Counted from the first letter of the stretch, positions 1,349 to 62,922 are shown. The stretch is DNA of 64,000 nucleotides from Macrostomum lignano (GCA_002269645.1 NIVC01000221.1:434001-498000); one strand, 5' to 3'. The notes: generated by a model not told the origin, from the sequence alone. A program made the numbers and translations.

Positions 1349-1523
1349 ATGTTTTCACAAAGCTTTGCTGTCATTTACTTGCTGATGTGGGCGGTGTTCG
1401 GAAGCTGCTTGACTTCGGTGCCGCCTCATCCGATGGCATTCCGCTACATCGGTTGCTTCGTGGATAAAAGGGACCCCGACATGACTGGCATGATTGGAGT
1501 CTCTGCATTCGGCCCATATTCAA
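1349..1523 (+). pseudogene. WSC-PAN family unit 1: 5' fragment of signal peptide + WSC exon, truncated by deletion
   Basis: MFSQSFAVIYLLMWAVFGSCLTSVPPHPMAFRYIGCFVDKRDPDMTGMIGVSAFGPYS aligns with the intact exon at 60640-61066. Homology stops at 1523, where the sequence joins the equivalent of position 36569. Confidence 0.85.
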
Positions 1524-1900
1524 ACTGGATGAGTCTTGGGATGCTGTTTGGCTGGCGGACCTCGATAATGGAGAGTTCAGCCTGAGGTAGCGTAGCCGGT
1601 CCCTGATAAAGAAAACGGCATTTGACAGACAAAGTGCTGAACATATTCGTTGTCCGTAGGTCCTATTATATGGCCCTATGGGGCAGGAAACGAATGCCGG
1701 CGTCAATTAGACGGCGGGAAATCTTGGAAGCTTTCCTGTGGACAAAGATCGTTTCCAGCAGGGGAATGTTGAGGAAGGCATTGAGACCATCATAAGGAGC
1801 AGACGGGGGGCGCTAATGATCATGCGGCATGCGCGCCCTTGCGTTCTCCTGAGAGTCTCTAGACAGGTCTTATCTGCAGGGCGCTAGCTCAGATCCACCA
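1524..1900 (-). mobile_element. Degenerate 3' fragment of a non-LTR retrotransposon (CR1/L2-like, post-RT region)
   Basis: Minus-strand translation LETLRRTQGRACRMIIS, continued in the 36.4-36.9 kb copy as ...PYDGLNAFLNIPLLET. This resembles the LERVQxRAxRII...Y...LNLPTLE stretch after the RT domain in CR1/L2-type LINEs. Recognised by eye only. Confidence 0.45.
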
Positions 1901-2879
1901 TTATCCTAAATAATTTAAAGTAATTCTTCAATAATTGTCGTTACAATTACCTTTACAGAACAACTGCAATATTTTTCAGTTGAAGGTGGACCCATTTGTC
2001 ATAATAAACAACCACCTGAGCCCGTTACCTTCAGTTTGCTCCCCACGACGCCTATAAATGTTGCTGAAAAATATGTGCTTTTACATTGCATCGAGGGATA
2101 ACGACGTTATACAACGGCTAAATGTCTGTGTAATATAAAATTTTGTCCTCACTGCTGATTTGTTGGTATGACAATTCTAGTTGCGTGATTACACTATGGT
2201 TTCTAAATCATTCTTTGTCGCTTTGTACATCTTTCATGTGAAACAATACTCGATTGTTAGTATTGTGAATGATATCATCGTGTGCAGTATCGTAACACCA
2301 TTTTAAATCTCATTTAAGCAATGTTTGACCGCCTAGTGACTAGCAGTAATGTCACACAGGGACTAATAAATACTGAGTAACCCTTAGGTAAAGTAAACCG
2401 GCTTAATGAAGAGGTACTTTTTCGCACCCACCCCCTATAGCTAGCATCAAACTTCTATCGCCCCCTAGTAATTTTGAATTTTGAATTTGAGTCAATGCGC
2501 ACATGCTTACGAGAGACGAAAATTTCAAGGATATTTTGATATGAACAGATGTTTTTGTTTTGTATAGCTCAGTTGCGTGTTTGGCTTGAGAGATACACTG
2601 GTAATAAACAATCGGATCGCATTTGCGCTTAAACTACTCTTTGTGTGAAGGTAGGGAATAGTAGTATATATGTCCCAAAAAGAAACTTACGATTAAGCTA
2701 AAATTGAGCTAAACCAAATTCTACTAGATAGCGGTCGAAAAAGTTAATTCCAGTGTCAGTCCGATGTATTCCGTCTTAACAAACCATCGAGAGAGGATGT
2801 GTTCAGAATGTTTCCAATATTTCTTGACTTGATTTTCTAATAAAAAAACAAGCAACAATCGTTTATTATATCTAAATAT

Positions 2880-3045
2880 ACTAAATCTTCCATATACTAT
2901 TATAAAACTATTCTGTCGGTATCTAGGTATGCGATCGATTTTAGCAAAAACGGCTCAACCGATTTTGTTCGAACTTGCACTGTTCGATCAGAAATTTTTC
3001 CGTGACGGTACGTGCAACGTGGCTAAGAAATTGCTCGATGCTATT
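2880..3045 (+). mobile_element. Possible non-autonomous Helitron-like fragment (also at about 37820-37980)
   Basis: catatactattataaaac...aaaacggctcaaccgatttt resembles the 5' motif of small invertebrate Helitrons. No clear 3' hairpin-CTAG end found. Confidence 0.3.
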
Positions 3046-3972
3046 TTAATCTAATAAAACAAATACTTTAGATTTTATCTGCTTAACTAGCTGCTGGCTA
3101 CTCAGCAATTTAGTTCTGCATCAGATCCCTTTATTAATCAGGCGTTGAGCATTCCGTGGATTTTCTGTGCTACCAAGAACACACGCATTCTTCACCGGCT
3201 AAGATTTCTAGGAAAATCAAGTGTAGCTTTCATGGACTTCAGCTGTCCATGGAAGTAAAAGCGCCCAGTTGCCAAAGCAGCTCCAAGGTTTTCCTCTATT
3301 TTTAACTCTAAAAAAGAGAAGTTTTTTAGCTTTTCTTCTTTTAACATCGCTTCTTCATCGATTTTAAAAGCAAACAACGGCTTGCATCTGCGGATGCATT
3401 TCTTCTTTGTTTCTCGAATTTCTGCAGCAAACTTTTTCGGCACAAGTCTGACTGAGAGACGCATTCACAGGTTCTGAACGCTGCATCAGTTACCAACCGG
3501 AAAAGCTCCTGCAGACAATGCATTGGGTTTGCTTTCTCATGACAGAGTCAGAATCGCACAACCAAACTTGGGATGGACAGATAGACAGCACCTGAATAGA
3601 AGGCTTCCTTCAACTTTTCTGTTTTTTAAAGGGAACTCACAGCTTATGCATCCCACATTCTTCTACATCCAGAGATAGGTAATATTTATGTATCCAATTG
3701 TGCATGCGTATTTGCCATAAATACATGAATATCTGCAAAATATAAGAATTAAGAGGGAATAAACCTAAATTGTTATCGATAGCCAGAAAGCATTAAAAAA
3801 GATTTGTATTTTTTTGTTTTTTTATAGCTACTTAGATATTAGATTTTTTCTCACAACTCAAAAAACATTGCAGGGTTAACATGAAACTTCATTTAGGACA
3901 GAGAAGGGGAACTCGATTTCAGGGTCAGCAGCAATGTTCTTGGGGGGTTTCAATGTATCGATTTTAATAACG

Positions 3973-3978
3973 TTTATT
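3973..3978 (-). terminator. Polyadenylation signal AATAAA of unit 2
   Basis: Plus-strand tttatt about 140 nt past the unit-2 stop and beyond the 28-bp array. The same arrangement occurs for unit 8 (59769-59774). Confidence 0.55.
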
Positions 3979-4028
3979 GTAATTTGCCTCCGTAATCAGC
4001 ACTTCAGTCTCTTGCGCCTTCACCCAGC

Positions 4029-4144
4029 TCAGCCTCAAAGCTTCATCCAGACCTACTCAGCCTCACAGCTTCATCCAGACTCTCTCAGCCTCACAGCTTC
4101 ATCCAGACCCACTCAGCCTCACAGCTTCATCCAGACCCCCTCAG
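4029..4144 (-). repeat. 28-bp stop-codon minisatellite of unit 2 (4 copies)
   Basis: Unit ctcagcctcacagcttcatccagaccca; on the coding strand this is GAG TGG GTC TGG ATG AAG CTG TGA (EWVWMKL*) plus 4 nt. The gene's stop at 4119-4121 lies in the copy next to the CDS. Confidence 0.95.
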
Positions 4145-4992
4145 TCTCGCTGGCCACCTCAGCGGGCACAGCGGCGAATCTCAGCAGGCGGCACATGCGG
4201 CTCGAAGGCACGAAGGCGCAGCCCTGACAGTCCGAGCTGCCGTAGCAGATGGTGGCGCATTCAACTGCACTGCTGGCTGCGATGTTGCGGTGAGTGATGG
4301 AGCTCGCGGAGGCTGTGATGTTCGGCAGAGACGTCAGGGGCAGTTTCGGCATCACCGGATTGACTGCAGAAGGGTTGGTTGAAAATATGGAATGCCAATA
4401 TAATATTTTATCAGTCAAATTAATTCGAATATTGATGGTTAAATCTTCCAATGAGAAGTAAATTTAATGAAAAAAGAGTTCAGTGTTTTTAAGTCGTCCT
4501 TCACTAACTTTACATAACCTGTGTTTACACTTGTGCGAGCTGCGTTAATCCGGAACACTTACTTTGTGGGTAAGTCAGTTCGTAGATGGAGTTTCTTGAG
4601 CCTCCACCGCAAATCTGAACCGAGTTTCCAGTGCAAGCTCTGCTGCAGTCGCCAGCCTGTGCGATGCCGTGCGATCCGTAGGCCGAGCCGCAGCAGCAGA
4701 AGCCCGCAGACTGAACTCCAAAGTAGCGAAATCGGCCGTAAGAGCACATCTGGCTGCACAGTTGCAGTGTCATCTTGGAGCCATCGTGACCGAATGCTGG
4801 GTTAGAAGGGTGAGTCTCAAACTGTCCGAACTTTTTGACTCCCTCCAGTCCTACGAGATCTCGGTTGCCATTACCGCCATCCACGTAGCAGCCGAGGTGG
4901 CGAAACTCCAACGGTTGAGGCGGCACCGCAGCAGCGGCGCAGCGTCCGGGACCAGCTGCCCAGCAGAGCAGCAAAGCGCAGAGTTTCAGCAT
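4119..4992 (-). CDS. WSC-PAN family unit 2: secreted WSC + PAN/Apple-like protein, 224 aa, two exons (4563-4992, 4119-4363)
   Basis: ATG at 4992 (MLKLCALLLCWAAG, hydrophobic leader). WSC motifs FRHLGCYVD...MTLQLCSQMC..GRFRYFGVQ..FCCCG...CS.AC.GN..QICGG..RNSIY. Donor CAA A|gtaagt and acceptor ccttctgcag|TC, both phase 1. 430+245 nt = 225 codons. Exon 2 has the PAN pattern C-x3-C-x5-C-x2-CAF-x6-CRLL. Confidence 0.9.
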
Positions 4993-5067
4993 TGGGAAAA
5001 AATCCCAGTGAGTGGCCGAACCGCAGTTTCTGAGACGCTTCTTCGGATTCTGGTAAGAAATTTGGGT

Positions 5068-5093
5068 AATATATTTGCTGGAAGAAGCCAATG
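5068..5093 (-). promoter_or_regulatory. Conserved upstream block (inverted CCAAT + AAATATATT), candidate promoter of units 2, 4 and 5
   Basis: aatatat(t/a)tgctg..agaagccaatga occurs about 75-100 nt upstream of the ATG at 5068, 40639 and 53971. The conservation may simply reflect recent duplication. Confidence 0.35.
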
Positions 5094-5224
5094 AAGAATT
5101 GACCACCTATGCTGTGCAAGGATTGGCTGAGGCTCCACCCTAATAGGAAAAAGGGATCGACCCCTAATGAGTAGCAAGACAGGAATATATCTGATATCTC
5201 TGATACTGTGTTCAAAAAGTTCAA

Positions 5225-25510: not shown

Positions 25511-25543
25511 CAACCAACCGCAGTCGTCGCCCCCCCCCCACAG

Positions 25544-39568: not shown

Positions 39569-39713
39569 CTCAGCCTCAAAGCTTCATCCAGACCTACTCA
39601 GCCTCACAGCTTCATCCAGACCCACTCAGCCTCACAGCTTCATCCAGACCCACTCAGCCTCACAGCTTCATCCAGACCCACTCAGCCTCAAAGCTTCATC
39701 CAGACCCACTCAG
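39569..39713 (-). repeat. 28-bp stop-codon minisatellite of unit 4 (5 copies)
   Basis: Units start at 39569, 39597, 39625, 39653 and 39681. Confidence 0.95.
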
Positions 39714-40837: not shown

Positions 40838-41640
<803 letters not shown>

Positions 41641-46397: not shown

Positions 46398-46745
46398 ACC
46401 CACAGCCTCACAGCTTCATCCAAACCCACTCAGCCTCAAAGCTTCATCCAGACCCACTCGGCCTCACAGCTTCATCCAGACCCACTTAGCCTCACAGCTT
46501 CATCCAGACCCATTCAGCCTCACAGCTTCATCAAAACCCACTAAGCCTCACAGCTTCATCCAGACCCACTCGGCCTCACAGCTTCATCCAGACCCACTCG
46601 GCCTCACAGCTTCATCCATACCCACTCAGCCTCACAGCTTCATCCAATCCAAACCCACTCAGCCTCACAGCTTCATCCAGACCCACTCGGCCTCACAGCT
46701 TCATCCATACCCACTCAGCCTCACAGCTTCATCCAGACCCACTCA
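46398..46745 (-). repeat. 28-bp stop-codon minisatellite of unit 5 (about 12 copies)
   Basis: Same unit, directly downstream of the PAN exon. Confidence 0.95.
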
Positions 46746-49700
46746 GCCTCGCTGGCCACCTCAGCGGGCACAGCGGCGAATCTCAGCAGGCGGCACATGC
46801 GGCTCGAAGGCACGAAGGCGCAGCCCTGACAGTCCGGGCTGCCGTAGCAGATGGTGGCGCATTCAACTGCGCTGCTGGCTACGATGCTGCGGTGAGTGAC
46901 GGAGCTCGCGGAGGCTGTGATGTTCGGCAGAGACGTCGCGGGCAGTTTCGGCATCACCGGATCGACTGTAGAAGGGTTGGTTGAAAATATTAATATAGTA
47001 TTCTTAACAGCCAGCCTTTTTTCCAATTTCTAAAATTTCGAATATCACGGGGGACTTAAAAACGACATTTTAAAGTCGTTTTTTGGCTAAATTAAAGAAC
47101 CCTGTTTTTACGCATGAAAGAGCTGCGTCAATCCAAAATGCTTACTTGGTGAGTAAGTCAATTCATAGATGGAATTTCTGTAAGTTTCACCGCAAATCTG
47201 AGACGAGTTTCCGCTGCAAGCCAAGCTGCAGTGGCCAGCCGATGCGATGCCGTGCGCCGCGACCGACAATGAGAGAAGAATCATCGAAAACCGCATCTCT
47301 CTATCATTTGGGCTCCCTGAATGGGATAAATGGGGAAAAATGGGGATTTCATGTGAACTTAAGGCTCTGAAATGGAAGCGCTGGCCGATTGAGCCGGTTT
47401 CTCTATCGGATCTCTCTACTGGACCGACAATGAGACAAGAATCGTCGAAAACCGCATCTCTCTATCATTTGGTCTCCCTGAATGGAATAAATGGGGAAAA
47501 ATGGGGATTTCATGTGAACTTATGGCTCAAAGAATCCAGTCTGAGGATCGTCCCGTTCACTGACTGCTATTGAGTCAAATACCAGTAGGCTGGCTACGCT
47601 CTCCCGCTTTTCTGTTGAGTGCGCGTTCGCCGCAATCAAGCAGAACAGGTGTATTCATGAGCGGCATGAGCCATACCAGTGGCAGCAGCCAGCTGAATTC
47701 AGTACATCTAGTCGGCTGGATGTCATTATCGACAACTGTATTGCCAAATACAACCGCTCGCACATTGGATTCCCACTGAATAAAACGCTGCCAAAGTCAT
47801 GGAATGACAGCTCACTTTTTTAGTTTGGTCAGAATTTTACCAGGCGCATGTTTCTCAGCAACGAATTCGATCCGATTGAAGGTGAGAACTACCTGTGTGA
47901 CGCGACCCGAACTCCTATCGAAGGGTCGAGGCGCTGGTCACCAGTTGATGTGCTAGATCCTGAGTCCACAGGCTTTCCTCGAATTGAGATAGAAAACCTT
48001 CAGGAAGTAAGTGTGGGACCATTTCATGTACAGCAGTCTGAAAGCTATATCCAAAACATCCAGGTGCAACGCACGCTTGAGAATTTCGCCGGTGATACGT
48101 TGTTAGAGCTTGAAGACCTTGCATCGCAGCTGCCTCAATCGATGCGCTGCTGGAAATTCCGGCAAGAACAGCAGGCAAGGAACTGGAAAAAAGAAATTCG
48201 GCAACGGGCAACCGTCGTGGATATTTATATCCGTTGTGTTTTCGAGGCACACATCTCGAACATATCGAGTCCTTCTTCGCCTCAACGATTTACCGAATGG
48301 AAACCCTTTTGGATTCCACGATGCCGGTCTAAGGAGGCTACATGCCTACTACTCCTCGTCCAAAGTGGGTAGCCGAACAGCTGGCTGTGACTGCCATGTA
48401 ATGGCAGTTCTTTTGCTCCTAGGTCATTATGCCTACGACCCAGATTCCTTTCGCCAACGATATCCTGAGCGCCGCTTCGTTGATACACAGCTTCCTAAAA
48501 GCCTCAACGCTAATCCTTACTCCTTTCTACCTGCTGAGGAAAATGTTAGAACAGAGCCTCGTCAAGAGCATCGTTCAAAGGAAAGGATGCCAAACAAACA
48601 TCATCAAGAAGTTCAGAGCCGCAGCCTCTCTGTGGACTAAGAAATAGCGGAGCAGACTGCTATGCCAATTCTGCCATTCAGCTTCTTTACTGGATGGAGC
48701 AGAAGGGCCCATTAATGAGACGGGACATAGCTAGCGACTTGCAAAGATCTGTAGAGCTACTTTTTCATCAAATGCTAGCTCTAAAAAATACTTCCGCCGC
48801 AGAAGTACAAGGAATTATCAGGCGCATCTTCCCGGCAGATTTGCTGCTGGTGAACAGCACTGCTTTCTGGAGTTCTTGGAAGCCCTGCTTTCGACTCTCT
48901 CGGTTGCTAATGGCGCCCTTGCAGATGTTACTGCGCTCCGTAATTGTCGACGTTGTGGCTACAGCGCAGCCTCGATTCCAACAGGAACAATCAGTGAACA
49001 AATTCTTTGCGTTCCTCTCTCAGAGTACAGCAGGGCTCCGATTAGCCTTTACGATCTTTTGGAAGAACGACTGCGACCACGCATTTCGCAGTGCGGCCAA
49101 TTAGGATGCGAAGGCTTGATTGAAAGCAGATTATTCCATCAGCGGCCAAGTTTGCAATTATTTACTTCAGCAGGACTCCAGAAAACTATAATACCGAAAA
49201 AATCAACACCCAAATACGGTACTCACCAAGAGCTGAGAGTAATTCCGACTTCGGCAGTCCTGTGATAGTGATATGCCACTATGGCAGATCTCTCCATCGC
49301 GGGCACTACACTACCAGTGTTTGGCATGACAATGTTGGTGGTTGATTGGCGATTCCAGAATTGAGCCCAACTGCAATCCGTTTCTCCGGGATGCACAAAA
49401 TATCGCTGCTGTAGTTGTGCAAAAGAAAGACTAATCGTGCTTTCACTAGATCGTAGACCCGAGCTAGACAAGTTTTAGTTTTTCCTTGCGATGCACTCCA
49501 ACATTCGAAAGACTTATACCTACCTATGAACTTTTGCTTGCCACTACTTGCTCTGTTCCATGTACTTTTGCTTGTTACTATTTGCTCATGCACTTTTGGT
49601 TCCCATTATTTGCAAATGCACTGTATTCATACAGTACTAAAATCGTGCATTTTAATATTTCATTAAACCTGTTCAAAAAAGTCTAATACAGATACTAAAA

Positions 49701-52700
49701 AGATATTTTAACGTTAAATATAGTTACAGAAATCATTAAAACATTCTTTAACATAAAGACTCAAGGCAGCTTTGCCGGCCTGCTTCATCGGTCAGATTCT
49801 CATTGTCGGTCCAGTAGAGAGATCCGATAGAGAAACCGGCTCAATCGGCCAACGCTTCCATTTCAGAGCCTTAAGTTCACATGAAATCCCCATTTTCCCC
49901 ATTTATCCCATTCAGGGAGCCCAAATGATAGAGAGATGCGGTTTTCGACGATTCTTCTCTCATTGTCGGTCCAGTAGAGAGATCCGATAGAGAAACCGGC
50001 TTAATCGGCCACCGCTTCCATTTCAGAGCCTTAAGTTCACATGAAATCCCAATTTTTCCCCATTTGTCCTATGCGGAAGCGGCCGGGGTGGAAGAAAGAT
50101 CAATTACGCTTTTCTTGTCTATTTTGGGTCTGAATAGTGAGAATTTTGCAGCGGTTTGGTTGCTGGACTCACGGCTTCCAAATCGCGCTTAAGTTCAAAT
50201 CCTCTTTCGAATATCACGGGGACTTAAAAACGACATTTTAAAGTCGTATTTTGGCTAAATTAAAGAACCCTGTTTTTACGCATGAAAGAGCTGCGTCAAT
50301 CCAAAATGCTTACTTGGTGAGTAAGTCAATTCATAGATGGAATTTCTGTAAGTTTCACCGCAAATCTGAGACGAGTTTCCGCTGCAAGCCAAGCTGCAGT
50401 GGCCAGCCGATGCGATGCCGTGCGCCGCGACCGACAATGAGAGAAGAATCATCGAAAACCGCATCTCTCTATCATTTGGGCTCCCTGAATGGGATAAATG
50501 GGGAAAAATGGGGATTTCATGTGAACTTAAGGCTCTGAAATGGAAGCGCTGGCCGATTGAGCCGGTTTCTCTATCGGATCTCTCTACTGGACCGACAATG
50601 AGACAAGAATCGTCGAAAACCGCATCTCTCTATCATTTGGTCTCCCTGAATGGAATAAATGGGGAAAAATGGGGATTTCATGTGAACTTATGGCTCAAAG
50701 AATCCAGTCTGAGGATCGTCCCGTTCACTGACTGCTATTGAGTCAAATACCAGTAGGCTGGCTACGCTCTCCCGCTTTTCTGTTGAGTGCGCGTTCGCCG
50801 CAATCAAGCAGAACAGGTGTATTCATGAGCGGCATGAGCCATACCAGTGGCAGCAGCCAGCTGAATTCAGTACATCTAGTCGGCTGGATGTCATTATCGA
50901 CAACTGTATTGCCAAATACAACCGCTCGCACATTGGATTCCCACTGAATAAAACGCTGCCAAAGTCATGGAATGACAGCTCACTTTTTTAGTTTGGTCAG
51001 AATTTTACCAGGCGCATGTTTCTCAGCAACGAATTCGATCCGATTGAAGGTGAGAACTACCTGTGTGACGCGACCCGAACTCCTATCGAAGGGTCGAGGC
51101 GCTGGTCACCAGTTGATGTGCTAGATCCTGAGTCCACAGGCTTTCCTCGAATTGAGATAGAAAACCTTCAGGAAGTAAGTGTGGGACCATTTCATGTACA
51201 GCAGTCTGAAAGCTATATCCAAAACATCCAGGTGCAACGCACGCTTGAGAATTTCGCCGGTGATACGTTGTTAGAGCTTGAAGACCTTGCATCGCAGCTG
51301 CCTCAATCGATGCGCTGCTGGAAATTCCGGCAAGAACAGCAGGCAAGGAACTGGAAAAAAGAAATTCGGCAACGGGCAACCGTCGTGGATATTTATATCC
51401 GTTGTGTTTTCGAGGCACACATCTCGAACATATCGAGTCCTTCTTCGCCTCAACGATTTACCGAATGGAAACCCTTTTGGATTCCACGATGCCGGTCTAA
51501 GGAGGCTACATGCCTACTACTCCTCGTCCAAAGTGGGTAGCCGAACAGCTGGCTGTGACTGCCATGTAATGGCAGTTCTTTTGCTCCTAGGTCATTATGC
51601 CTACGACCCAGATTCCTTTCGCCAACGATATCCTGAGCGCCGCTTCGTTGATACACAGCTTCCTAAAAGCCTCAACGCTAATCCTTACTCCTTTCTACCT
51701 GCTGAGGAAAATGTTAGAACAGAGCCTCGTCAAGAGCATCGTTCAAAGGAAAGGATGCCAAACAAACATCATCAAGAAGTTCAGAGCCGCAGCCTCTCTG
51801 TGGACTAAGAAATAGCGGAGCAGACTGCTATGCCAATTCTGCCATTCAGCTTCTTTACTGGATGGAGCAGAAGGGCCCATTAATGAGACGGGACATAGCT
51901 AGCGACTTGCAAAGATCTGTAGAGCTACTTTTTCATCAAATGCTAGCTCTAAAAAATACTTCCGCCGCAGAAGTACAAGGAATTATCAGGCGCATCTTCC
52001 CGGCAGATTTGCTGCTGGTGAACAGCACTGCTTTCTGGAGTTCTTGGAAGCCCTGCTTTCGACTCTCTCGGTTGCTAATGGCGCCCTTGCAGATGTTACT
52101 GCGCTCCGTAATTGTCGACGTTGTGGCTACAGCGCAGCCTCGATTCCAACAGGAACAATCAGTGAACAAATTCTTTGCGTTCCTCTCTCAGAGTACAGCA
52201 GGGCTCCGATTAGCCTTTACGATCTTTTGGAAGAACGACTGCGACCACGCATTTCGCAGTGCGGCCAATTAGGATGCGAAGGCTTGATTGAAAGCAGATT
52301 ATTCCATCAGCGGCCAAGTTTGCAATTATTTACTTCAGCAGGACTCCAGAAAACTATAATACCGAAAAAATCAACACCCAAATACGGTACTCACCAAGAG
52401 CTGAGAGTAATTCCGACTTCGGCAGTCCTGTGATAGTGATATGCCACTATGGCAGATCTCTCCATCGCGGGCACTACACTACCAGTGTTTGGCATGACAA
52501 TGTTTGGTGGTTGATTGGCGATTCCAGAATTGAGCCCAACTGCAATCCGTTTCTCCGGGATGCACAAAATATCGCTGCTGTAGTTGTGCAAAAGAAAGAC
52601 TAATCGTGCTTTCACTAGATCGTAGACCCGAGCTAGACAAGTTTTAGTTTTTCCTTGCGATGCACTCCAACATTCGAAAGACTTATACCTACCTATGAAC

Positions 52701-53894
52701 TTTTGCTTGCCACTACTTGCTCTGTTCCATGTACTTTTGCTTGTTACTATTTGCTCATGCACTTTTGGTTCCCATTATTTGCAAATGCACTGTATTCATA
52801 CAGTACTAAAATCGTGCATTTTAATATTTCATTAAACCTGTTCAAAAAAGTCTAATACAGATACTAAAAAGATATTTTAACGTTAAATATAGTTACAGAA
52901 ATCATTAAAACATTCTTTAACATAAAGACTCAAGGCAGCTTTGCCGGCCTGCTTCATCGGTCAGATTCTCATTGTCGGTCCAGTAGAGAGATCCGATAGA
53001 GAAACCGGCTCAATCGGCCAACGCTTCCATTTCAGAGCCTTAAGTTCACATGAAATCCCCATTTTCCCCATTTATCCCATTCAGGGAGCCCAAATGATAG
53101 AGAGATGCGGTTTTCGACGATTCTTCTCTCATTGTCGGTCCAGTAGAGAGATCCGATAGAGAAACCGGCTTAATCGGCCACCGCTTCCATTTCAGAGCCT
53201 TAAGTTCACATGAAATCCCAATTTTTCCCCATTTGTCCTATGCGGAAGCGGCCGGGGTGGAAGAAAGATCAATTACGCTTTTCTTGTCTATTTTGGGTCT
53301 GAATAGTGAGAATTTTGCAGCGGTTTGGTTGCTGGACTCACGGCTTCCAAATCGCGCTTAAGTTCAAATCCTCTTTCGAATATCACGGGGACTTAAAAAC
53401 GACATTTTAAAGTCGTATTTTGGCTAAATTAAAGAACCCTGTTTTTACGCATGAAAGAGCTGCGTCAATCCAAAATGCTTACTTGGTGAGTAAGTCAATT
53501 CATAGATGGAATTGCTGTAAGCCCCACCGCAAATCTGAGACGAGTTTCCGCTGCAAGCCAAGCTGCAGTGGCCAGCCGATGCGATGCCTTGCGATCCATA
53601 GGCCGAGCCGCAGCAGCAGAAGGCCGCAGACTGAACTCCAAAGTAGCGAAATCGGCCGTAAGAGCACATCTGGCTGCACAGTTGCAGTGTCATCTTGGCG
53701 TCATCGAAACCGAACGCTGGGGCGAGAGGGTGAGTCTCAAACTGTCCGAACTTTTTCACCCCCTCCAGTCCTACAAGATCTCGGTTGCCAACAGCGCCAT
53801 CCACGTAGCAGCCGAGGTGGCGAAACTCCAACGGTTGAGGCGGCACCGCAGCAGCGGCTGCCCAGCAGAGCAGCAGAGCGCAGAGTTTCAGCAT
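46721..53894 (-). CDS. WSC-PAN family unit 5: 218 aa if exon 53483-53894 is spliced to 46721-46965 across a 6.5-kb intron
   Basis: Intact leader + WSC exon (412 nt, donor A|gtaagc) and intact PAN exon (245 nt, cttctacag|TC), phase-compatible. The intron holds two element copies and two decoy exon ends, so this splicing is inferred. Confidence 0.6.
47146..47256 (-). pseudogene. Duplicated 3' end of the WSC exon with intact donor (copy 1; copy 2 at 50314-50424)
   Basis: HGIASAGHCSLACSGNSSQICGETYRNSIYELTYSP|gtaagc. Part of a direct repeat of about 220 bp at 47036, 50205 and 53374. Confidence 0.9.
47257..50204 (+). mobile_element. Defective element X, copy 1: inverted arms of tandem 161-bp units around a decayed transposase-like interior
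   Basis: 161-bp unit at 47261 and 47422, and inverted at about 49797-50068. The interior peptides FPRIEIENLQEVSVGPFHVQQSESYI and SRHTSRTYRV...AYYSSSKVGSRTAGCDCHVMAVLLLLG resemble the C-terminal SWIM-like region of Harbinger/ISL2EU-related transposases (by eye). The frames are broken. Confidence 0.65.
50425..53373 (+). mobile_element. Defective element X, copy 2 (tandem, near-identical)
   Basis: Offset 3168-3169 nt. The ORF track repeats identically except around a 1-bp indel near 52503. Confidence 0.7.
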
Positions 53895-54443: not shown

Positions 54444-56511
54444 TCACAGCTTCATCCAGACCCACTCAGTCTCGCTGGCCACCTCAGCGGGCCCAGCGGC
54501 GAATCTCAGCAGGCGGCACATGCGGCTCGAAGGCACGAAGGCGCAGCCCTGACAGACCGGGCTTCGCTGGCAGGTGGCGGCGCATTGGATGGCGCTCTTC
54601 GCCGTGGAGTTGCGATAGGCAGAAGCGCTCGCCAAGACTGAGATGCTTGGCATGTCGGTCACTGGTAGCTTGGTCATGATTTTTTCAGCTGTGGGAGAAT
54701 TGCAAGGTTTACTCAAAATTATAGGAATCAATCAGTCAACCAAACGTAGGTTTTGTAGTTTTCAAATGATGAATGTCCCATTAAGGCATAAAGAATCTTA
54801 TGGTTGACTGAAAGAATCCATTAAGGCATATCCCAGATCCTGTCGATTTCAGGGGTCCTTAGACTAGTACTCTACTAGCGGCGCTCTGATGTGCCAGCGG
54901 CCCAGGCTCGATTCCAAGTGCGGTCAAATTAATTTGGTGCTAAATTGGAATCTCGGCTTGGCTCTGCTCGTGTAATTAGCGGCCTTGAAGGCCTATCACC
55001 CAGGCGCAGTGAAGTGTAAATTCCTAACCATTTTATAAAAGGTTGTTTTTCAAAAAATCGACAATCAACAAAAAGGAACACCAACACCAACTTGCACCGT
55101 GAAAAGGGTTTCTTCACGGTAAGAGGGTCAAATCCAAAGTTAGAACCCCACAGAATAAAGATAGTTTGGGCCATAGACAGCCCAAGACTGAGAGACAGGC
55201 AAACCTTTAAGTGGACATCCAAACTGGCAATTTACAGCCATAGAGATCGATGTGCCTTTCTGTTAGATTCTACACAGTTGTCAGAGCTTGCCTTCACATT
55301 AGCATTACGGATTGTTATTGTATGGTTATTCCCCCAGTTCTATTTAAGTTTTTAAAACACAATCACACTTAGGTGTTAATCAACTTATTTATAAATGTAA
55401 ATTGCAAGTTTAGACGTCCACTCCCGCGCGCCTAAAAATTTGATTGCCTCTTCCTAGTTAAATCTTCCGTCTTCCGACTTACCTGACTGGCTGAGGCTAA
55501 CTTGGAAGAAGTGGGTGATTTAACTAGGAAGACGGAAGAATCGTTTAATTTATTGAGCGTCGCGGAAATTTAGGACCTATACCTGAATTTTACTACTGCG
55601 GTTAGTAGTTGAATAAAATTTAGTAAGATGATTAATTATTTTAGTTATGAAAAGCCCTAGAAGTAGTAGGAATAACAATTGAAGTACAGCTTTGTTTAAG
55701 TGCTTTTAATTCAAACGGTCAGTTTAACTAGGGCTCGATCTTTAATTTCACTCATTCTTAGTTTAACCCTGAATATTCACAGCTAAACTAGAAATTCAAC
55801 TAGGAATAGGCTTAATTTTTTTAAGCGGCCTTCCAGGTTTGCCTGTCTCTCAGTCAGGCTTCTCAGTGCTGTCTATGGCCCCATCTATATCTTTATTCTA
55901 TGAGATTTTTAGTCGGACAAAAGCAGTATCAGTATAATTCGCTTTATTTCAGGCCTCCGGTAGCATTTCTTGTTTCATACCCATACTTGTTTCAGATAAA
56001 ATTAGGAAGCTCAACATTCAAGCTTCAGTGAAACTGACATGTTTTGTGAGTTTAGCCAACTTTCAATGCATGCAAGCGATTACCTACTAGGCTTATAGAC
56101 GATTTCAAAGATGGAATTGGTCCAGCTGGCACCGCACACCTGCGACGCGTTCCCACTGCAAAGAGCAGCGCATTTTCTCTCCTCGACCGCGCCAAGCGAC
56201 CCGTAAGCAGATCCGCAGCAGCAAAAAAAAGCTGCTTGCACACCAAAATAGCGGAACCGACCGTATGAGCAGATCCGGCTGCACTTCTGCAGTGTCATTT
56301 TCCTGCTCTTGACGAAGGCGCTGTACTTGCGGTCAACTGTGTACCGGTCTAACGCAATGACGCCTTCCAGTCCTTGCAGGTCTCGATCGCTGTTACTTCT
56401 GCTGTCAGCGAAGCATCCGATGTAGCGAACTTCTCGAAACTGGGGCGGCTCAGAAGCCAGCAACGGCACCCATGCAGACAGGAAGGCAACTAAAATTATA
56501 GGCGCTTGCAT
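54444..56511 (-). CDS. WSC-PAN family unit 6: divergent secreted WSC + PAN protein, 222 aa (exons 56088-56511, 54444-54688)
   Basis: MQAPIILVAFLSAWVPLLAS leader and VRYIGCFAD...CCCG...CGASWTNSIF. Donor CCT A|gtaggt and acceptor ctcccacag|CT, phase 1. 424+245 nt; 1399-nt intron. Confidence 0.87.
54888..55020 (+). mobile_element. Truncated SINE family 1 copy in the unit-6 intron
   Basis: gtgccagcggcccaggctcgattccaagtgc...ggaatctcggcttggctctgctcgtg...aggcgcagtgaagtgta matches about 29295-29425. Confidence 0.8.
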
Positions 56512-57299: not shown

Positions 57300-57598
57300 T
57301 ATCCAGACCCACTCAGCCTCACAGCTTCATCCAGACCCACTCAGCCTCACAGCTTCATCCAGACCCACTCAGCCTCACAGCTTCATCCAGACCCACTCAG
57401 CCTCACAGCTTCATCCAGACCCACTCAGCCTCACAGCTTCATCCAGACCCACTCAGCCTCACAGCTTCATCCAGACCCACTCAGCCTCACAGCTTCATCC
57501 AGACCCACTCAGCCTCACAGCTTCATCCAGACCCACTCAGCCTCACAGCTTCATCCAGACCCACTCAGCCTCACAACATCATCCAGACCCGCTCAGTC
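57300..57598 (-). repeat. 28-bp stop-codon minisatellite of unit 7 (about 10 near-perfect copies)
   Basis: Same unit. Confidence 0.95.
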
Positions 57599-58762
57599 TC
57601 GCTAGCCACCTCAGCGGTGAATCTAAGCAGGCGGCACATGCGGCTCGAAGGCACAAAGGCGCAGCCCTGACAGTCCGGGCTTCGCTGGCAGAAGGAGGCG
57701 CACTGGAAGACACTGCTGACTTCTGTGCTAAGGGCGGTGACGGATTTCAGCTTCTTGTAGCTTGAAACGGTTGGCATTTTTACAACTTGCAGTCTTGTCA
57801 GCAGAGAGCGATCTGAGTGTGGTGGTACATGTGTTAGGATAGGAATATTGTCAATTGCTAAGATTAATTACTGTCAAATTTACGTTTTTACCCAGCATTC
57901 AAACTCGGACTTACCCACATGATAAGTTACTTCATGCATAAATAGAGTTGCTCACTTCCCCACCGCATATCTGAGATACATTGCCGCTGCATTTGGATTG
58001 GCAGTTGCTCTCAAAATCCTTTCCATTTGATCCGTACATCCTGCCGCAGTAGCAAAACGAATCGAATTGACAACCAAAGTAGCGGAACCGCCCATATGAG
58101 CAGCTCGGGCTGCACAGCTCCACAGTGAGCGAATTACTTTCAAAAAACCGCCGACAGCATTTAAATGGCCCAGCGAGACCAAAGCCCTGGGCTAACGCCC
58201 CCGACTACCGGCAATCCCGTGCGGTTGTCCCCTGTCCTTCCCCCGCCTTGCGCTGGGCCCTGCTTGGACTCTACTGCAGGGACATCAGGGCGGTGAACAT
58301 GGCCGTCATGGCTGTTTTGCCAGGCATCGTCACCTCCATGGAAAAATCCGCAGTGAGGAATGCCCCTTCTGCCTCTCCGGTGTCGAGAATGCGGAGCACT
58401 TTATCTGTGAATGCCCCGCCTTTACTAGGCTCACCTACCTCGGCCCAAACCCGGATCTCTCCGATGTTTTCTGGCCCGAGAATCTCTGCCAGCTCGTCCG
58501 CTACCCAAGGGCTACCGGGTGGACGACAAACCACCTCCTGGACTCTCTGGAGGGGGACTGCGCTGCGGACACCGGCACCACTGGAACTCCCTGCGCGACA
58601 CCGCAGCAAGAGACCAGAGCCCAAAATTCCTCTCAGATCTTTGTAACTTTCCGCATAGCAACCGACGTAGCGAATGCGTTGCGATTGCGGTGGTACGGAA
58701 GTGGTGCACAGCCTACCAAGAGCTGCACAGAACAGCAGGAGATTAATTGGTAGTATTTTTAT
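57571..58762 (-). pseudogene. WSC-PAN family unit 7 (pseudogene)
   Basis: Reconstructed (I)[50 protein letters not shown]|[34 protein letters not shown]... The presumed start reads ATA. A 422-bp insertion interrupts exon 1, and a 4-bp frameshift (TAT GCA TGA) precedes the donor at 57914. Acceptor cacactcag|AT at 57813; the PAN exon is open. Confidence 0.85.
58188..58609 (-). mobile_element. 422-bp GC-rich insertion with a 13-bp target-site duplication
   Basis: gagacca(a/g)agccc at 58175-58187 and 58610-58622. Removing the insert and one repeat restores the WSC frame. Confidence 0.8.
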
Positions 58763-59794: not shown

Positions 59795-60145
59795 CCCAGA
59801 CCCGCTCAGCCTCACAGCTCCATCCATACCCACTCAGTCTCACAGTTTCATCCAGACCCTCTCATTCTCACAGCCTCATCCAGACCCGCTCAGTCTCACA
59901 GCTCCATTCATACCCACTCAGTCTCACAGTTTCATCCAGACCCTCTCATTCTCAAAGCCTCATCCAGACCCACTCAGCCTCACAGCTTCATCCAGACCCT
60001 CTCATTCTCACAGCCTCATCCAGACCCGCTTAACCTCACAGCTTCATCCAGACCCACTCAGTCTCACAGTTTCATCCAGACCCACTCAGCCTCATAGCTT
60101 CATCCAGACCTACTCAGCCTCACAGCTTCATCCAGACCCATTCAG
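59795..60145 (-). repeat. 28-bp stop-codon minisatellite of unit 8 (about 12 diverged copies, with an 84-bp higher-order duplication)
   Basis: Lies between the stop (60120) and AATAAA (59769-59774). Confidence 0.92.
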
Positions 60146-61066
60146 CCTCGCTGGCCACCTCAGCGGGCACAGCGGTGAATCTCAGCAGGCGGCACATGCG
60201 GCTCAAAGGCGCGAAGGCGCAGCCCTGACAGTCCGGGCTTCGCTGGCAGGCGGCAGCGCACTGGATGGCGCTCTTGGCATAGACGCTGCTGTGAGTGATG
60301 GAGCTCAGTGAAGCTGAGATGCTCGGCATGGCAGAAGCTGGCAGCTTGGTCACTGCTTGGCCAGCTACAAAAGTTGTATTAGAACAGAATTTAGAAATTT
60401 TTACTCAAAAACTAGAAATAATAAATCTGTTTACGAGTGTATGGAAATATCTGGGATTTATTCAACGAACACCGATTGCCCTGACTTTTCCAGTTAGAAT
60501 TTGCAGTTTGGTTTTAAAAAGAATACTTTCAGTATGAAATCATAAAAAATCCTGCTTTGTGTTACGGTTTTTGATGTTTTAATGAGGTTGCCGTCCTGAC
60601 AGGCAAAACAAAATTTGCATGATAAAAAGTCCCTCTCACCGTGATTGTAAATATTTTCGTAGACGGAGTTCCTCATGTCTCCACCACAAATTTGAGATGA
60701 GTTTCCCTTGCATTTATACGAGCAGTCACTAGCCGAGGCTGTACCGAACGAGCCGTAGGTGTTGCCGCAGCAGCAGTATCCACCGTACCTCGCTCCGAAG
60801 TACCGAAATCTCCCATAAGCGCAGATCTGGCTGCACAGCTGCAGCGTCATCGAAGCGCCTTGCGCAATTGATGGCCATCCTGACAAGATCGAATACGGAC
60901 CGAATGTAGCGACTCCAACGAGGCCCGTCATGTCGGGGTGGTCCGTAGTGTCCACGAAGCAGCCGATGTAGCGGAATGTCGTCGGATGAGGCGGCACGGA
61001 AGTCAAGCAGCTTCCGAACGCTGCCCACATCAGCAAGTAGCCTACAGAAAAGCTTTTTGAAAACAT
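60120..61066 (-). CDS. WSC-PAN family unit 8: secreted WSC + PAN protein, 223 aa (exons 60640-61066, 60120-60364)
   Basis: MFSKSFSVGYLLMWAAFGSCLTS leader and FRYIGCFVD...YCCCG...ICGGDMRNSVY. Donor CAC G|gtgaga and acceptor cttttgtag|CT, phase 1. 427+245 nt. Confidence 0.9.
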
Positions 61067-61314
61067 TTGATCCTCTGCTGGTCTTTATGGTCAGTGTTTG
61101 GAGTTTTGGGGTTTCCGAATGTGCCTGCTCTGTGCTGTGAACCGGTTCCTACGCTTATGTTTTGATCGTAACCGCTTCTGATGTTTTCCCGACTCGGGAA
61201 TGGCTGTCTGGTTGCTAGGGGCCTGAGCCAGTGAGAAAGCAGCTGCATTTTCAAGCTCGTGCTGCGCTCATGAGCCACTAAAATAAAGTTAAGGACGCTG
61301 CACTCGCCAATCGC

Positions 61315-61566
61315 GGGTTGTAGCCTAGTGGTTAGATCGTCGGACTCACGACTTGAAGGCCGGGGGTTCGATTCCCTATCCACTCAGAAAAATTTGTGTC
61401 ATTGAGCAAGACACTTGACTCTGCATTGCTTCAGTTCACACAGCTGTAAAATCGGTGCCAGCATTAGCTGGGGTAATTGAGGGTGTGTGGCGACTCCCAG
61501 TCCCTGGACTTAACAGCCGTACGCAGCCTTCAGCTGCTCCGCGCAATTGCTGCGGCTGAGCTGTCG
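61315..61566 (+). mobile_element. tRNA-headed SINE family 2 (CORE/MIR-like body)
   Basis: TAGCCTAGTGG and GGTTCGATTCC boxes; ttgagcaagacacttgactct...cttcagtt...ctgtaaaat. Shares the 3' end gctgagctgtcg with the 45066 copy. Confidence 0.78.
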
Positions 61567-62059
61567 TTCCATTAAGCTTTGCGTTTCATTTCGATCTGTT
61601 TCGGAAATACAACTGTGTTTTGAGCGCTGTCGTTCTGTAATAATACATTTTTCAATCTATTCACTTGAATAATTTCGTTTCACATTGTATTGGGCAGTCC
61701 AGATATTGAGATGCGCGAGTTTAGTGTTAAAAACTGAACTTAGTTGCGTATATCATGTCAGGTTCAGAATGTATTTACAACTATATTAAATCCAAAAGTT
61801 TAAATTGAGCTAGTAAATTTAATTTTGAATGTAACAATCCTTTATTAGTAATTTTAGTAGAACCATACGTTTTCCCTCGACACTTGCATTCCATTCACAA
61901 TAAAGGCATTGCATTTTCAGTAGTTATTCTTGATAGCGTTGCAAATAATAAGGCATAAAGAATAGTCAAAGCCTGAGTCATGTCTATTTTTAATAAGTGC
62001 GCTATAATTCTTGCCCAGAATCCTTTTAACAGTTTTTCATTAGAGATGAATCAGCGTGG

Positions 62060-62510
62060 CAGTTTCATCCAGACCCACTCAGCATCACAGCTTCATCCAG
62101 ACCCACTCAGCTTCACAGCTTCATCCAGATCCGCTCAGCCTCACAGCTTTAATTAGACCCACTCAGCTTCACAGCTTTATCCAGATCCACTCAGCTTCAC
62201 AGCTTCATTCAGACCCACTCAGTTTCACAGTTTCATCCAGATCTGCTCAGTCTCACAGCTTTAATTAGACCCACTCAGCTTCACAGCTTTATCCAGATCC
62301 ACTCAGCTTCACAGCTTCATTCAGACCCACTCAGTTTCACAGTTTCATCCAGATCTGCTCAGTCTCACAGCTTCATCCAGACCCATTCAGCCTCACAGCT
62401 TCATCCAAATCCGCTCAGCCTCACAGCTTCATCCAGACCCATTCAGCCTCACAGCTTCATCCAGATCCGCTCAGCCTCACAGCTTCATCCAGACCCACTG
62501 AACCTCACAG
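62060..62510 (-). repeat. 28-bp stop-codon minisatellite of unit 9 (about 16 copies, with a 112-bp higher-order duplication)
   Basis: Same unit, diverged. Confidence 0.92.
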
Positions 62511-62922
62511 ACTCAAGGTGCAGCCCAGACAGTCCGGGCTTCTCTGGCAGGTGGCAGCTCACTCGATGACTTCGCTGACTTCTGCGCTAAGGTCAGTTAC
62601 GGATCTCAGCTTCATAAAGCTTGAAATGCTCGGCATTTTTCGCCCCTTGCAGCCATGTCAGCAGAGAGCGATCTGAGTGTGATACACGCGTTAGGATAGG
62701 ACATTCGATCAATTTTTAAGACCAATTATTGTCAAAGATATGCTTTTCTTACTGAGCAGTCAAATAGACGCCCCCCCCCCTACTTACCCACAGGGTAAAT
62801 TACTTCATAAGCAGAGTCGCTCAGTTCAAGGCCGCACATCTGAGACACATTTTCGCTGCATTCGGATTGACAGTTGCTCTCCAATTCCTTCCAGTTGGAT
62901 CCGCTAGTCCGGCCGCAGGAGC
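62504..62922 (-). pseudogene. WSC-PAN family unit 9 (pseudogene, closest to unit 7)
   Basis: WSC 3' half SCGRTSGSNWKELESNCQSECSENVSQMCGLELSDSAYEVIYPV G|gtaagt (donor at 62787); the 5' half is missing. The PAN exon has a +1 frameshift, TGA in place of the first Cys, and a deletion running into the array. Confidence 0.85.

Follow-up and report, generated by a model that had tools for sequence, protein, structure and literature searches.

A flatworm-restricted cluster of WSC-PAN genes in Macrostomum lignano with intact and broken copies and a shared 3' end

Nine units of a two-exon gene

A tblastn search of the window (the whole 64,000-nt stretch of DNA analyzed here) with two spliced products as queries located nine units of one two-exon gene, u1 to u9, at the positions given in a first-pass annotation of the same DNA (Table 1). 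A 100%-identical match to a UniProt entry of Macrostomum lignano identifies the source. In the shared layout, a first exon encoding a probable signal peptide and a WSC domain is followed by a phase-1 GT-AG intron and a 245-nt second exon encoding a PAN/Apple domain. Open reading frames for products of 218-224 aa are found in five of the nine units and the other four (u1, u3, u7, and u9) are pseudogenes, the same division that the first-pass annotation had made. Four of its splice junctions, 4563/4363, 40135/39932, 56088/54688, and 60640/60364, proved exact (GT...AG, phase 1, exon 2 of 245 nt) and give products of 224, 224, 222, and 223 aa, respectively, and the 245-nt PAN exon ascribed to all five intact copies is indeed there in each, u5 included. 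Sequence comparison also recovered the proposed sub-lineages, i.e., u2/u4/u5, u1/u3/u8, and u7/u9, with u6 as a divergent unit.

Table 1. Units of the WSC-PAN gene and associated repeats, with positions counted along the window
Feature	Position	Strand	Description	Support
Segmental duplicate	39..5207	.	91-95% identical to 32921-40779	self-megablast
u1	1349..1555	+	truncated exon-1 pseudogene fragment (signal peptide and WSC start), u3/u8 lineage	tblastn
u2, whole	4992->4119	-		tblastn
u2 exon 1	4563..4992	-	430 nt, probable signal peptide and WSC	ATG 4992, donor GTAAGT 4562, Pfam WSC 40.4 bits
u2 intron	4364-4562	-	199 nt, phase 1	
u2 exon 2	4119..4363	-	245 nt, PAN/Apple and stop	acceptor CAG 4364, 224-aa product, PAN_1 21.5 bits
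u2 minisatellite	4022..4148	-	28 bp, 4.5 units, reaching back over stop and last ~9 codons	TRF, direct reading
u3	34224..34954	+	pseudogene, both exons, ~70-nt intron, nearest u8	tblastn
u4, whole	40564->39688	-		tblastn
u4 exon 1	40135..40564	-	430 nt	tblastn, Pfam WSC 45.7 bits
u4 intron	39933-40134	-	202 nt, phase 1	
u4 exon 2	39688..39932	-	245 nt, product 224 aa	spliced translation
u4 3' minisatellite	39563..39717	-	28 bp, 5.5 units	TRF
u5 exon 1	53483..53894	-	412 nt	tblastn, spliced translation
Tandem repeat	47036..53593	.	period 3169 bp, 2.07 copies, 99.8% identical	self-megablast, tblastn fragments
u5 exon 2	46721..46965	-	245 nt	joined to exon 1 only via 6517-nt intron
u5 3' minisatellite	46403..46750	-	28 bp, 12 units	TRF
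u6 exon 1	56088..56511	-	424 nt, divergent copy	tblastn, Pfam WSC 45.2 bits
u6 intron	54689-56087	-	1399 nt, phase 1	
u6 exon 2	54444..54688	-	245 nt, without minisatellite	spliced translation
u7	57571..58756	-	pseudogene	tblastn
u7 3' minisatellite	57301..57600	-	28 bp, 10.7 units	TRF
u8 exon 1	60640..61066	-	427 nt	Pfam WSC 49.1 bits
u8 intron	60365-60639	-	275 nt, phase 1	
u8 exon 2	60120..60364	-	245 nt	PAN_1 28.1 bits, AlphaFold model pLDDT 84.6
u8 3' minisatellite	59796..60149	-	28 bp, 12.6 units	TRF
u9	62421..62922	-	5'-truncated pseudogene, u7 lineage, stop in PAN exon	tblastn
u9 3' minisatellite	62060..62510	-	28 bp, 16 units	TRF

This pattern is not due to chance, because the GC content is 0.57-0.60 in the exons versus 0.32-0.39 in the four short introns (0.46 in the 6.5-kb intron of u5), alignment between distant paralogs is restricted to the exons, all 13 conserved cysteines are invariant, and two public gene models made independently of the present calls, UniProt A0A1I8J167 for u2 and A0A1I8J1U2 for u5, have the identical junction. 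The former agrees with u2 exon 1 and the latter differs by one residue from the spliced product of u5. Each intact unit has its own ATG and hydrophobic leader and ends in TGA, after which come a minisatellite with a stop in the next frame (except in u6, which has no minisatellite) and a poly(A)-like hexamer. The locus is a real cluster of a flatworm-restricted M. lignano WSC-PAN gene family and does not amount to a new type of system. Around it lie satellites and mariner remnants totalling about 18 kb.

The block holding u1 and u2 duplicates the one holding u3 and u4, with the two genes convergent within each, but lacks the stretch matching 34397-36567. What is left of u1 is a ~190-nt fragment of exon 1, 85% identical to u8 over 1349-1521, where the homology stops. 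Pseudogene u3, whose exons 1 and 2 are 82% and 91% identical to those of u8, has 4-nt and 11-nt deletions and an in-frame stop and has lost its stop codon. In u7 the ATG is absent, exon 1 has an insertion of ~480 nt (58619-58141) and a frameshift near its end, and the PAN exon has a 9-nt deletion. The signal peptide of u5 carries an 18-nt in-frame deletion relative to u2/u4, and its product reaches 218 aa only if a 6517-nt intron is spliced. The 3169-bp tandem repeat covers the end of this gene's exon 1 together with most of the intron, and both full copies of the repeat contain a decoy, donor included, of the final ~105 nt of exon 1 (47257-47153 and 50425-50321), so that splicing of u5 must bypass two decoy donor sites. 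The tandem repeat may have arisen by duplication very recently or may be an artefact of assembly.

Domain content of the products

That exon 1 encodes a WSC domain is certain, being borne out by Pfam HMM, cysteine spacing, and fold. The four window proteins score 40.4-49.1 bits with Pfam WSC (PF01822) against a cut-off of 27.8, and the HMM matches 21 of 21 family members. The WSC cysteines of u8 (36, 78, 82, 98, 100, 115, 119, and 127) are invariant in family alignments, and the last seven have exactly the spacing of those of yeast Wsc1 (49, 53, 69, 71, 86, 90, and 98; PMC9024836), with a gap after the first cysteine (C36) that is 20 residues longer than in Wsc1. The CGG motif is present as ICGG, with CGA instead in u6. 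For the AlphaFold model of u8, the best Foldseek matches were the WSC domain of Kremen1 (5fws, E 7.7e-6) and Wsc1 (7pz2, E 1e-5, target TM-score 0.73).

The reading of exon 2 as PAN/Apple is supported by HMM matches, most of them close to the threshold, by profile search of the PDB, and by a confident AlphaFold model, with the second domain being a minimal four-cysteine PAN core. PAN_1 (PF00024) scores are 21.5, 21.3, 20.6, and 28.1 bits against a cut-off of 21.4, three of them at or within 1 bit of the cut-off, and in the wider family 19 of 21 members are matched at E < 0.1, the best at 3e-7. A profile of the C-terminal domain of the family retrieved from the PDB SML-2 (E 6.4e-5), TgMIC4 (E 3.7e-4), and the HGF N domain (E 4.7e-4). 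Four cysteines (178, 182, 188, and 200 in u8), spaced C-x3-C-x5-C-x11-C, are invariant in 21 sequences, as are one Leu and one Phe; the module lacks the outer apple-type disulfide. The model of u8 (pLDDT 84.6, pTM 0.77) has a strand-helix-hairpin core in the PAN region, for which Foldseek retrieved factor XI (E 2e-3), prekallikrein, and, with probabilities of 0.8-0.97, HGF, SML-2, and Eimeria PAN. WSC itself adopts the PAN/Apple fold (PMC9024836), and each product therefore amounts to a tandem pair of PAN-fold modules.

The products had been taken for small, secreted, soluble proteins. They are small, the N-termini are hydrophobic (10-residue Kyte-Doolittle mean 1.75-2.55), and no second hydrophobic segment was found in the products by hydropathy. 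The putative signal peptide, judged by hydropathy, has its hydrophobic core between residues 4 and 17, with small residues ahead of a plausible cleavage site, and residues 1-23 are unstructured in the model of u8. The products are thus probably soluble, with a cleavable signal peptide, and secretion is likewise probable.

Evolution of the cluster

Birth and death of copies, as first proposed, agrees with the five intact and four dead copies and with the segmental and tandem duplications; however, it does not operate in pure form, as the 3' end of the gene evolves in concert. The last 45 codons show a synonymous divergence (dS) of 0.03-0.14, whereas the WSC part shows 0.9-4.3 or saturation. Identity rises to at least 0.9 from the DCQGCAF codons through the stop codon, and the step recurs in u3 and u7, both pseudogenes, and in an unlinked paralog, which delimits a homogenised tract of the last ~111 nt of coding sequence (~37 codons). 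The last 143 nt of u6 exon 2 are 90-94% identical to u2/u4/u5, whereas its first 102 nt are unalignable. In six of the eight PAN exons, a 28-bp minisatellite, itself homogenised across paralogs, starts inside the last codons.

The cluster has grown by segmental duplication (u1+u2 from the u3+u4 block) and by tandem duplication, and has lost copies via truncation, insertions, and indels. Divergence is fast in the WSC domain and in the first half of the PAN exon, and the last ~37 codons and the adjoining 3' minisatellite stay near-identical among paralogs, most likely by gene conversion, to judge from the sequence. In an extension of this proposal that we consider rather unlikely, recurrent gene conversion seeded by the minisatellite, which begins inside the last nine codons, would keep the C-terminal half of PAN and the 3' UTR array near-constant even between unlinked loci, leaving WSC and the first half of PAN free to diversify. 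Such a variable head on a constant tail might give seminal-fluid lectins under sexual conflict a docking or oligomerisation surface or an mRNA-level control element. The constant tail holds an extra unpaired cysteine.

The wider family

Besides this cluster, further loci in M. lignano carry members of the same, larger family. We found at least ~15 divergent clusters of the WSC-PAN architecture (~210-230 aa), from several loci, and all family matches come from M. lignano. The unlinked paralog BOX15_Mlig013640g1 has the same gene layout, as does BOX15_Mlig005479g1, which is only 33% identical and has an exon 2 of 230 nt. The first-pass annotation had not recognized this architecture as a named family and had left its newness unsure. 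No member has been characterized; however, UniProt already holds family members under the automatic label "WSC/Apple domain-containing protein," so the architecture is uncharacterized rather than unseen. In the literature searched, no mention of the locus IDs of family members was found.

Possible function

Our favored explanation, which we hold to be probable, is a tandem cluster of flatworm-restricted proteins of ~220 aa that are likely a soluble, bivalent, lectin-like gland product, with the prostate as the leading candidate source, and that evolve by duplication, loss, and a concerted 3' end. The soluble product, secreted from a gland, would act as a bridge or in the manner of a lectin. 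If that gland is the prostate, the products would belong to the seminal fluid and bind glycoconjugates either on sperm or within the female tract of the partner. Both ligand type and tissue are putative here, glycan or protein binding being judged from other WSC and PAN domains. Seminal fluid ranks first among the candidates, since WSC proteins make up about a third of the transcripts known to be prostate-limited in M. lignano; it is in the prostate that small secreted WSC proteins of this species have been documented (PMC5977470). The M. lignano literature favors reproduction over immune or adhesive roles, with the present genes unlinked to any studied transcript: the 36 primers of 18 RNAi-tested seminal-fluid candidates (among Mlig-pro1-76) had no match in the window at up to three mismatches.

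The absence of all 18 of these studied candidates from the window would also suit a less probable reading, in which proteins of the same architecture are non-reproductive, i.e., secreted pattern-recognition, mucus, or digestive lectins, whose ligands could be, for instance, chitin, beta-glucans, or polysaccharides of algae, taken from microbes or from the diatom diet. The structural and PDB-profile searches matched WSC- or PAN-bearing fungal copper-radical oxidases (9n3u, 6ryv, and 6stx) and galactose-binding apicomplexan apple lectins (2yil, 2yip, and 4a5v). In fungal oxidases, the WSC domains are binders of xylan, chitin, and beta-1,3-glucan, and immune lectin families, too, typically show lineage-specific tandem expansion along with pseudogenes. 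Were the genes non-reproductive, the turnover in copy number would be driven by host-microbe or dietary pressure. Against this stands the prostate as the documented site of such proteins in M. lignano.

It is improbable that the cluster is mostly decaying, with the intact copies being young duplicates, weakly transcribed or silent, that have no disabling mutations yet in a region rich in satellites and transposons. Four of nine units are dead, the surroundings are as described above, u5 is split by a 6.3-kb duplicated insert, and among the young copies u2, u4, and u5 pN/pS is ~0.77, indistinguishable from neutral (Fisher p ~0.47). Database searches found no public protein for u6 or u8, so these two may be unexpressed. 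However, u6 and u8 are old (dS saturated versus the other copies) and yet keep open frames, the 13 cysteines, and exact exon lengths, with dN/dS of 0.10-0.43 in the WSC part between old paralogs. The coding sequence of u2/u4 is free of indels although the introns have them, and public gene models exist for u2-type and u5-type copies.

Finally, M. lignano models with 3-6 alternating WSC-PAN units (P0012, P0014, and P0173) and public entries such as two of 1074 and 2673 aa, in which 5-6 PAN-like stretches occur, raise the thought that u5-u9, all on the minus strand, are exons of one long alternating protein, which is very improbable given the start, leader, and terminal signals of each intact unit, the broken state of the intervening u7 and u9, and the existence of NCBI single-unit models, which are transcript-derived.

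Comparison with known WSC and PAN proteins

The proteins of the favored explanation, putative lectin-like gland products, can be set beside the prostate-limited WSC candidates of the same species (Mlig-pro4, 5, 11, 28, 38, 46, 49, 63, and others; Weber et al. 2018, 2019). Like the probably secreted window products, these are small secreted WSC proteins from multi-copy loci; each of their transcripts maps to several Mlig_3_7 genes, and many are without close homologues outside the genus. They differ in that 18 of the candidates have no primer match in the window and that several are described with two WSC domains (PMC4490696) and not WSC plus PAN. Among mollusc multi-WSC proteins, Octopus bimaculoides LOC106869731 likewise combines PAN-like and WSC regions in a secreted lophotrochozoan protein; however, its 517 aa begin with two weak N-terminal PAN-like stretches, after which come about five WSC domains, instead of one of each, and the similarity is clear in the WSC part only.

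With yeast Wsc1, Kremen1, and fungal copper-radical oxidases, the window proteins share the eight cysteines, the last seven at Wsc1 spacing, the CGG motif, and the fold. Unlike these, they are probably soluble products of ~200 aa with a single PAN partner, they carry no catalytic, kringle, or CUB domain and neither a Ser/Thr-rich stalk nor a transmembrane segment, and their WSC subfamily has a ~20-residue insertion after the first cysteine and an extra cysteine (CCC). The PAN module is linked by profile and fold matches to HGF, factor XI, prekallikrein, TgMIC4, Sarcocystis SML-2, and Eimeria MIC5, and shares with the HGF N domain a C-x3-C helix that pairs with two downstream cysteines. In contrast to true apple domains, it is a minimal four-cysteine core in which the outer N-to-C disulfide is missing, and it departs from other PF00024 systems in its near-threshold HMM scores, in its compact form of ~80 residues in a single exon, and in the fifth cysteine of its subfamily (CQGC).

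Gene units and predicted structure

A tblastn search of the window with two spliced products recovered nine units (u1 to u9) at exactly the positions where the first-pass annotation had placed a cluster of two-exon genes, each joining a WSC exon to a PAN/Apple exon, and rebuilding the genes from sequence, with splicing predicted, returned its four junction coordinates exactly: 4563/4363, 40135/39932, 56088/54688 and 60640/60364; the u5 junction falls at 53483/46965. The observation of a nine-unit, two-exon cluster is confirmed: the cluster is real, had been read correctly and is of moderate interest. All five predicted introns are GT-AG and in phase 1, exon 2 has the same length in all five intact copies, and the five intact ORFs, as reconstructed, encode products of 218-224 aa. 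GC content is 0.57-0.60 in the coding sequences, while the four short introns have 0.32-0.39 and the 6.5-kb intron of u5 has 0.46. Alignment with distant paralogs is confined to the exons, and the junction is identical in public gene models of u2-type and u5-type copies. The window comes from the genome of Macrostomum lignano, a free-living flatworm, and the spliced u2 product is 100% identical to UniProt A0A1I8J167 over the aligned region, with one residue different across the 211-aa entry.

The four units called as pseudogenes do carry disabling lesions, and re-comparison recovered the sub-lineages 2/4/5, 1/3/8 and 7/9 with u6 solitary.

Predicted structure of the nine units
Unit	State	Exon 1 (nt)	Intron (nt)	Exon 2 (nt)	Product (aa)	Lesions
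u1	pseudogene	~190 (fragment)
u2	intact	430	199	245	224
u3	pseudogene					4-nt and 11-nt deletions, internal stop, stop codon lost
u4	intact	430	202	245	224
u5	intact	412	6517	245	218
u6	intact	424	1399	245	222
u7	pseudogene					no ATG, ~480-nt insertion, frameshift, 9-nt deletion
u8	intact	427	275	245	223
u9	pseudogene					5' end truncated, stop within PAN exon

Two other readings of these ORFs were considered. One, in which the PAN ORFs arise by chance or belong to a repeat, is rejected on account of their fold, their invariant cysteines, the conservation of phase and length, and the identical structure in distant paralogs; the other, in which units 5-9 make up a single long gene, is rejected since a start codon, a leader and a stop codon are present in each unit. 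Scans of the window for tRNAs and Rfam families gave no matches.

Protein domains and fold

The WSC domain scores 40-49 bits against a Pfam cut-off of 27.8 and contains a CGG motif. Cysteines 78, 82, 98, 100, 115, 119 and 127 of u8 are spaced as are cysteines 49, 53, 69, 71, 86, 90 and 98 of yeast Wsc1 (PMC9024836), and a ~20-residue insertion lies after the first cysteine of the domain, ahead of these seven. The assignment of exon 2 to PAN holds on a check that combines borderline Pfam scores for the individual proteins (20.6-28.1 bits against 21.4) with family-profile and Foldseek matches to PAN structures. PAN_1 is matched by 19 of the 21 members of the wider family, whose alignment shows four invariant cysteines (C-x3-C-x5-C-x11-C) with an invariant Leu and Phe, and a profile of the C-terminal domain matches the apple-domain lectins SML-2 (E 6e-5) and TgMIC4 and the HGF N domain in the PDB.

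With 21 sequences, AlphaFold predicted a structure with a pLDDT of 84.6 and a pTM of 0.77 (pLDDT was 41 from only 9 sequences), in which the second domain has a strand-helix-hairpin core. Foldseek searches of the PDB returned only WSC structures (Kremen1, Wsc1 and a glyoxal oxidase) and PAN/Apple structures (factor XI, prekallikrein, HGF, SML-2 and Eimeria PAN). Because the WSC domain itself adopts the PAN/Apple fold and shares two of the four disulfides it contains with PAN cores (PMC9024836), the protein is best described as a tandem of two PAN-fold modules, one of the eight-cysteine WSC type and one a minimal four-cysteine core. The N-termini are hydrophobic leaders by hydropathy and are disordered in the AlphaFold model; judged from hydropathy, the proteins are likely to be secreted.

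In the family protein alignment (A4), u2, u4, u5, u6 and u8 each carry two cysteines in addition to the canonical sets: in the WSC domain the central residue of 'CCC', and in the PAN domain the latter C of 'CQGC'. In u8 these are C99 and C191. The subfamilies P0007, P0008 and P0009, which are related, retain only the PAN extra cysteine, and the resulting odd number of cysteines hints at intermolecular disulfides.

A homogenised 3' end linked to a minisatellite

The most unusual element of the locus, absent from the first-pass annotation, is a homogenised 3' end linked to a minisatellite. The last ~111 nt of coding sequence, from the 'DCQGCAF' codons to the stop codon, show 90-100% identity across every paralog, with the unlinked paralog BOX15_Mlig013640g1 (Mlig013640g1) and pseudogenes u3 and u7 included, whereas the whole of exon 1 and the first ~100 nt of exon 2 are only 40-77% identical. 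Over the last 45 codons, dS is 0.03-0.14 within the cluster and 0.26-0.32 in comparisons with the unlinked paralog; values for the WSC part are 0.9-4.3 or saturated. Constraint on the protein cannot give rise to such a pattern, which requires either gene conversion or selection on the nucleotide sequence itself. Given this step in identity and dS, the birth-and-death evolution proposed for the array stands in the 5' two-thirds of each gene and gives way to concerted evolution at the 3' end.

In six of the eight PAN exons of the window, the last nine codons (…AEWVWMKL-stop) double as the first unit of a 28-bp minisatellite, GGCTGAGTGGGTCTGGATGAAGCTGTGA, whose arrays of 4.5-16 units extend downstream of the coding end; the second unit lies in another frame and leads to a stop almost immediately. 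The unlinked paralog carries the minisatellite too (at about 10720-10900 of its locus record, L001). The array has no other occurrence in the window and is absent from u3, u6 and the distant member Mlig005479g1. Poly(A)-like hexamers lie close behind the arrays in u2, u4 and u8, with no such motif in the ~700 nt that follow the u5 array, and these hexamers suggest that the arrays are probably 3' UTR.

Duplication, selection and surrounding repeats

Positions 39-5207 of the window match 32921-40779 at 91-95% identity, which makes the convergently oriented u1 and u2 a duplicate of u3 and u4; u1 has lost the stretch matching 34397-36567. The minus strand carries u5-u9 in head-to-tail order. A tandem repeat starts within the final part of u5 exon 1 and occupies most of the u5 intron; each full copy of it holds a decoy of the last ~105 nt of u5 exon 1 with its donor site. 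The repeat is of very recent origin or else an assembly artefact, which leaves the working state of the putative gene u5 uncertain. The repeat's ~2.95-kb non-genic part, possibly an unknown mobile element or an assembly artefact, contains overlapping plus-strand ORFs, and Pfam searches of the ORFs of this 3-kb element gave no match; nor did those of the ORFs of the insertion that splits u7 exon 1.

Between old paralogs, dN/dS in the WSC part is 0.10-0.43 with dS saturated, values that indicate purifying selection. For u2, u4 and u5, the young trio, pN/pS is about 0.77, not different from 1, and the coding sequences have zero frameshifting indels, with indels present in the introns.

About 18 kb of satellite arrays lie between the two segmental duplicates. 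The (ATAG)n microsatellite upstream of u4 is absent from the duplicated copy upstream of u2.

Repeats, mobile DNA and insertions in the window
Feature	Window position	Strand	Remarks
28-bp minisatellite arrays	4022-4148, 39563-39717, 46403-46750, 57301-57600, 59796-60149, 62060-62510
151-bp repeat	5949-6894
Satellite region, whole	7416-25252
19-mer satellite	7416-9683
30/60-mer satellite	10341-11480
22-mer satellite	12012-21477		9.5 kb, strong GC skew
23-mer satellite	22608-23680
31-mer satellite	24519-25252
Related transposon DNA	29259-29620
Mariner/Tc1-type transposase ORF	29787-30578	-	Pfam Transposase_1, E 1e-13; Mos1-type HTH
28-mer, different from the gene-end minisatellite	30808-31696
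(ATAG)n microsatellite	40835-41639		~200 units, starts about 270 bp upstream of u4 start codon
Tandem repeat at u5	47036-53593		period 3169 bp, 2.07 copies, 99.8% identical
ORFs in non-genic part of u5 repeat	47848-49265	+	overlapping
ORF at u7 insertion	58125-58646	+
u7 insertion	58141-58619		~480 nt
ORF at u7 insertion	58271-58624	-
Related transposon DNA	63255-63614		second fragment of element, near window end

The family beyond the window

All homologues from a search of 5.8 billion proteins are from M. lignano. A profile search of 1.84 billion representative proteins gave thousands of WSC matches, about 15 clusters at 50% identity having both modules within one stretch of ~180-230 aa; the two-module clusters looked up are all from M. 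lignano, at several loci. Family loci in this species are BOX15_Mlig013640, 021789, 023418, 025784, 003588, 005479, 027391 and 015848. Long models with 3-6 alternating WSC-PAN units also occur and look like other tandem arrays fused by gene predictors. A second protein search, with u8, brought up only proteins recovered by the earlier one and held nothing identical or close to u8 or u6.

The unlinked paralog shares with the window genes the two exons, the intron phase and the 245-nt exon 2, and the 33% identical Mlig005479g1 also has two exons, with a phase-1 intron at the equivalent position and an exon 2 of 230 nt. Since the intron is shared this widely, the module boundary coincides with a phase-1 intron that is old.

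P0141, a 160-aa protein from an ENA metagenome contig of 655 bp, is closely related to exon 1 (leader and WSC), and its reading frame runs on into apparent intron sequence. The source of P0141 is possibly another macrostomid in the sample.

Possible function

Glycans or proteins are the ligands of WSC and PAN domains elsewhere (PMC9024836), and PAN domains that bind galactose or heparin are among the PDB matches; by analogy, a soluble protein holding both modules could link two ligands. The leading candidate, at somewhat less than an even chance, is that these would be prostate or seminal-fluid products. By our own count, about 27 of the 76 transcripts confined to the prostate have WSC-type BLAST matches (PMC5977470 Table S1), such transcripts map to multi-copy loci, and PMC7336406 reports fast evolution of reproduction-related genes in the genus. 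Among the candidate transcripts of the RNA815 assembly, RNA815_17071.1 and RNA815_32421 match an oyster protein called 'Plasminogen'. Against a direct link, the 36 primers available for 18 of these 76 candidates, those studied by RNAi, gave no match in the window. The WSC matches in the supplements of Arbore et al. 2015 belong to other transcripts. A non-reproductive secreted lectin, with which the lectin-like PAN matches would also agree, is rather unlikely; adhesive, cement or shell secretions of other glands seem distinctly improbable, and a largely non-functional cluster equally so.

Significance and comparison with known families

Sexual conflict and seminal-fluid biology in hermaphrodites are studied in M. 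lignano as a model organism, and its prostate candidate list is dominated by WSC proteins. A compact family with one WSC and one PAN domain is a tractable entry point, offering small expressible proteins, a confident structural model and a clear paralog series for binding and RNAi work. The sharp boundary between the diversifying part and the homogenised 3' end with its minisatellite also provides a clean natural case in which to study the effects of gene conversion and duplication on secreted recognition proteins. If the genes prove unexpressed or non-reproductive, this would be an ordinary lineage-specific lectin-like expansion.

A literature search found no description of the family or of a WSC-plus-PAN architecture in M. 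lignano, and a full-text search with six family locus IDs found no mention in papers; UniProt already labels family proteins automatically as WSC or Apple domain-containing. Both are classical domains, and secreted binding proteins commonly undergo lineage-specific expansion in tandem. The one-plus-one secreted architecture was seen in M. lignano only, in a protein set that probably lacks other macrostomids. In contrast to the single WSC and single PAN domain of the window proteins, an octopus protein has five WSC domains together with weak PAN-like stretches.
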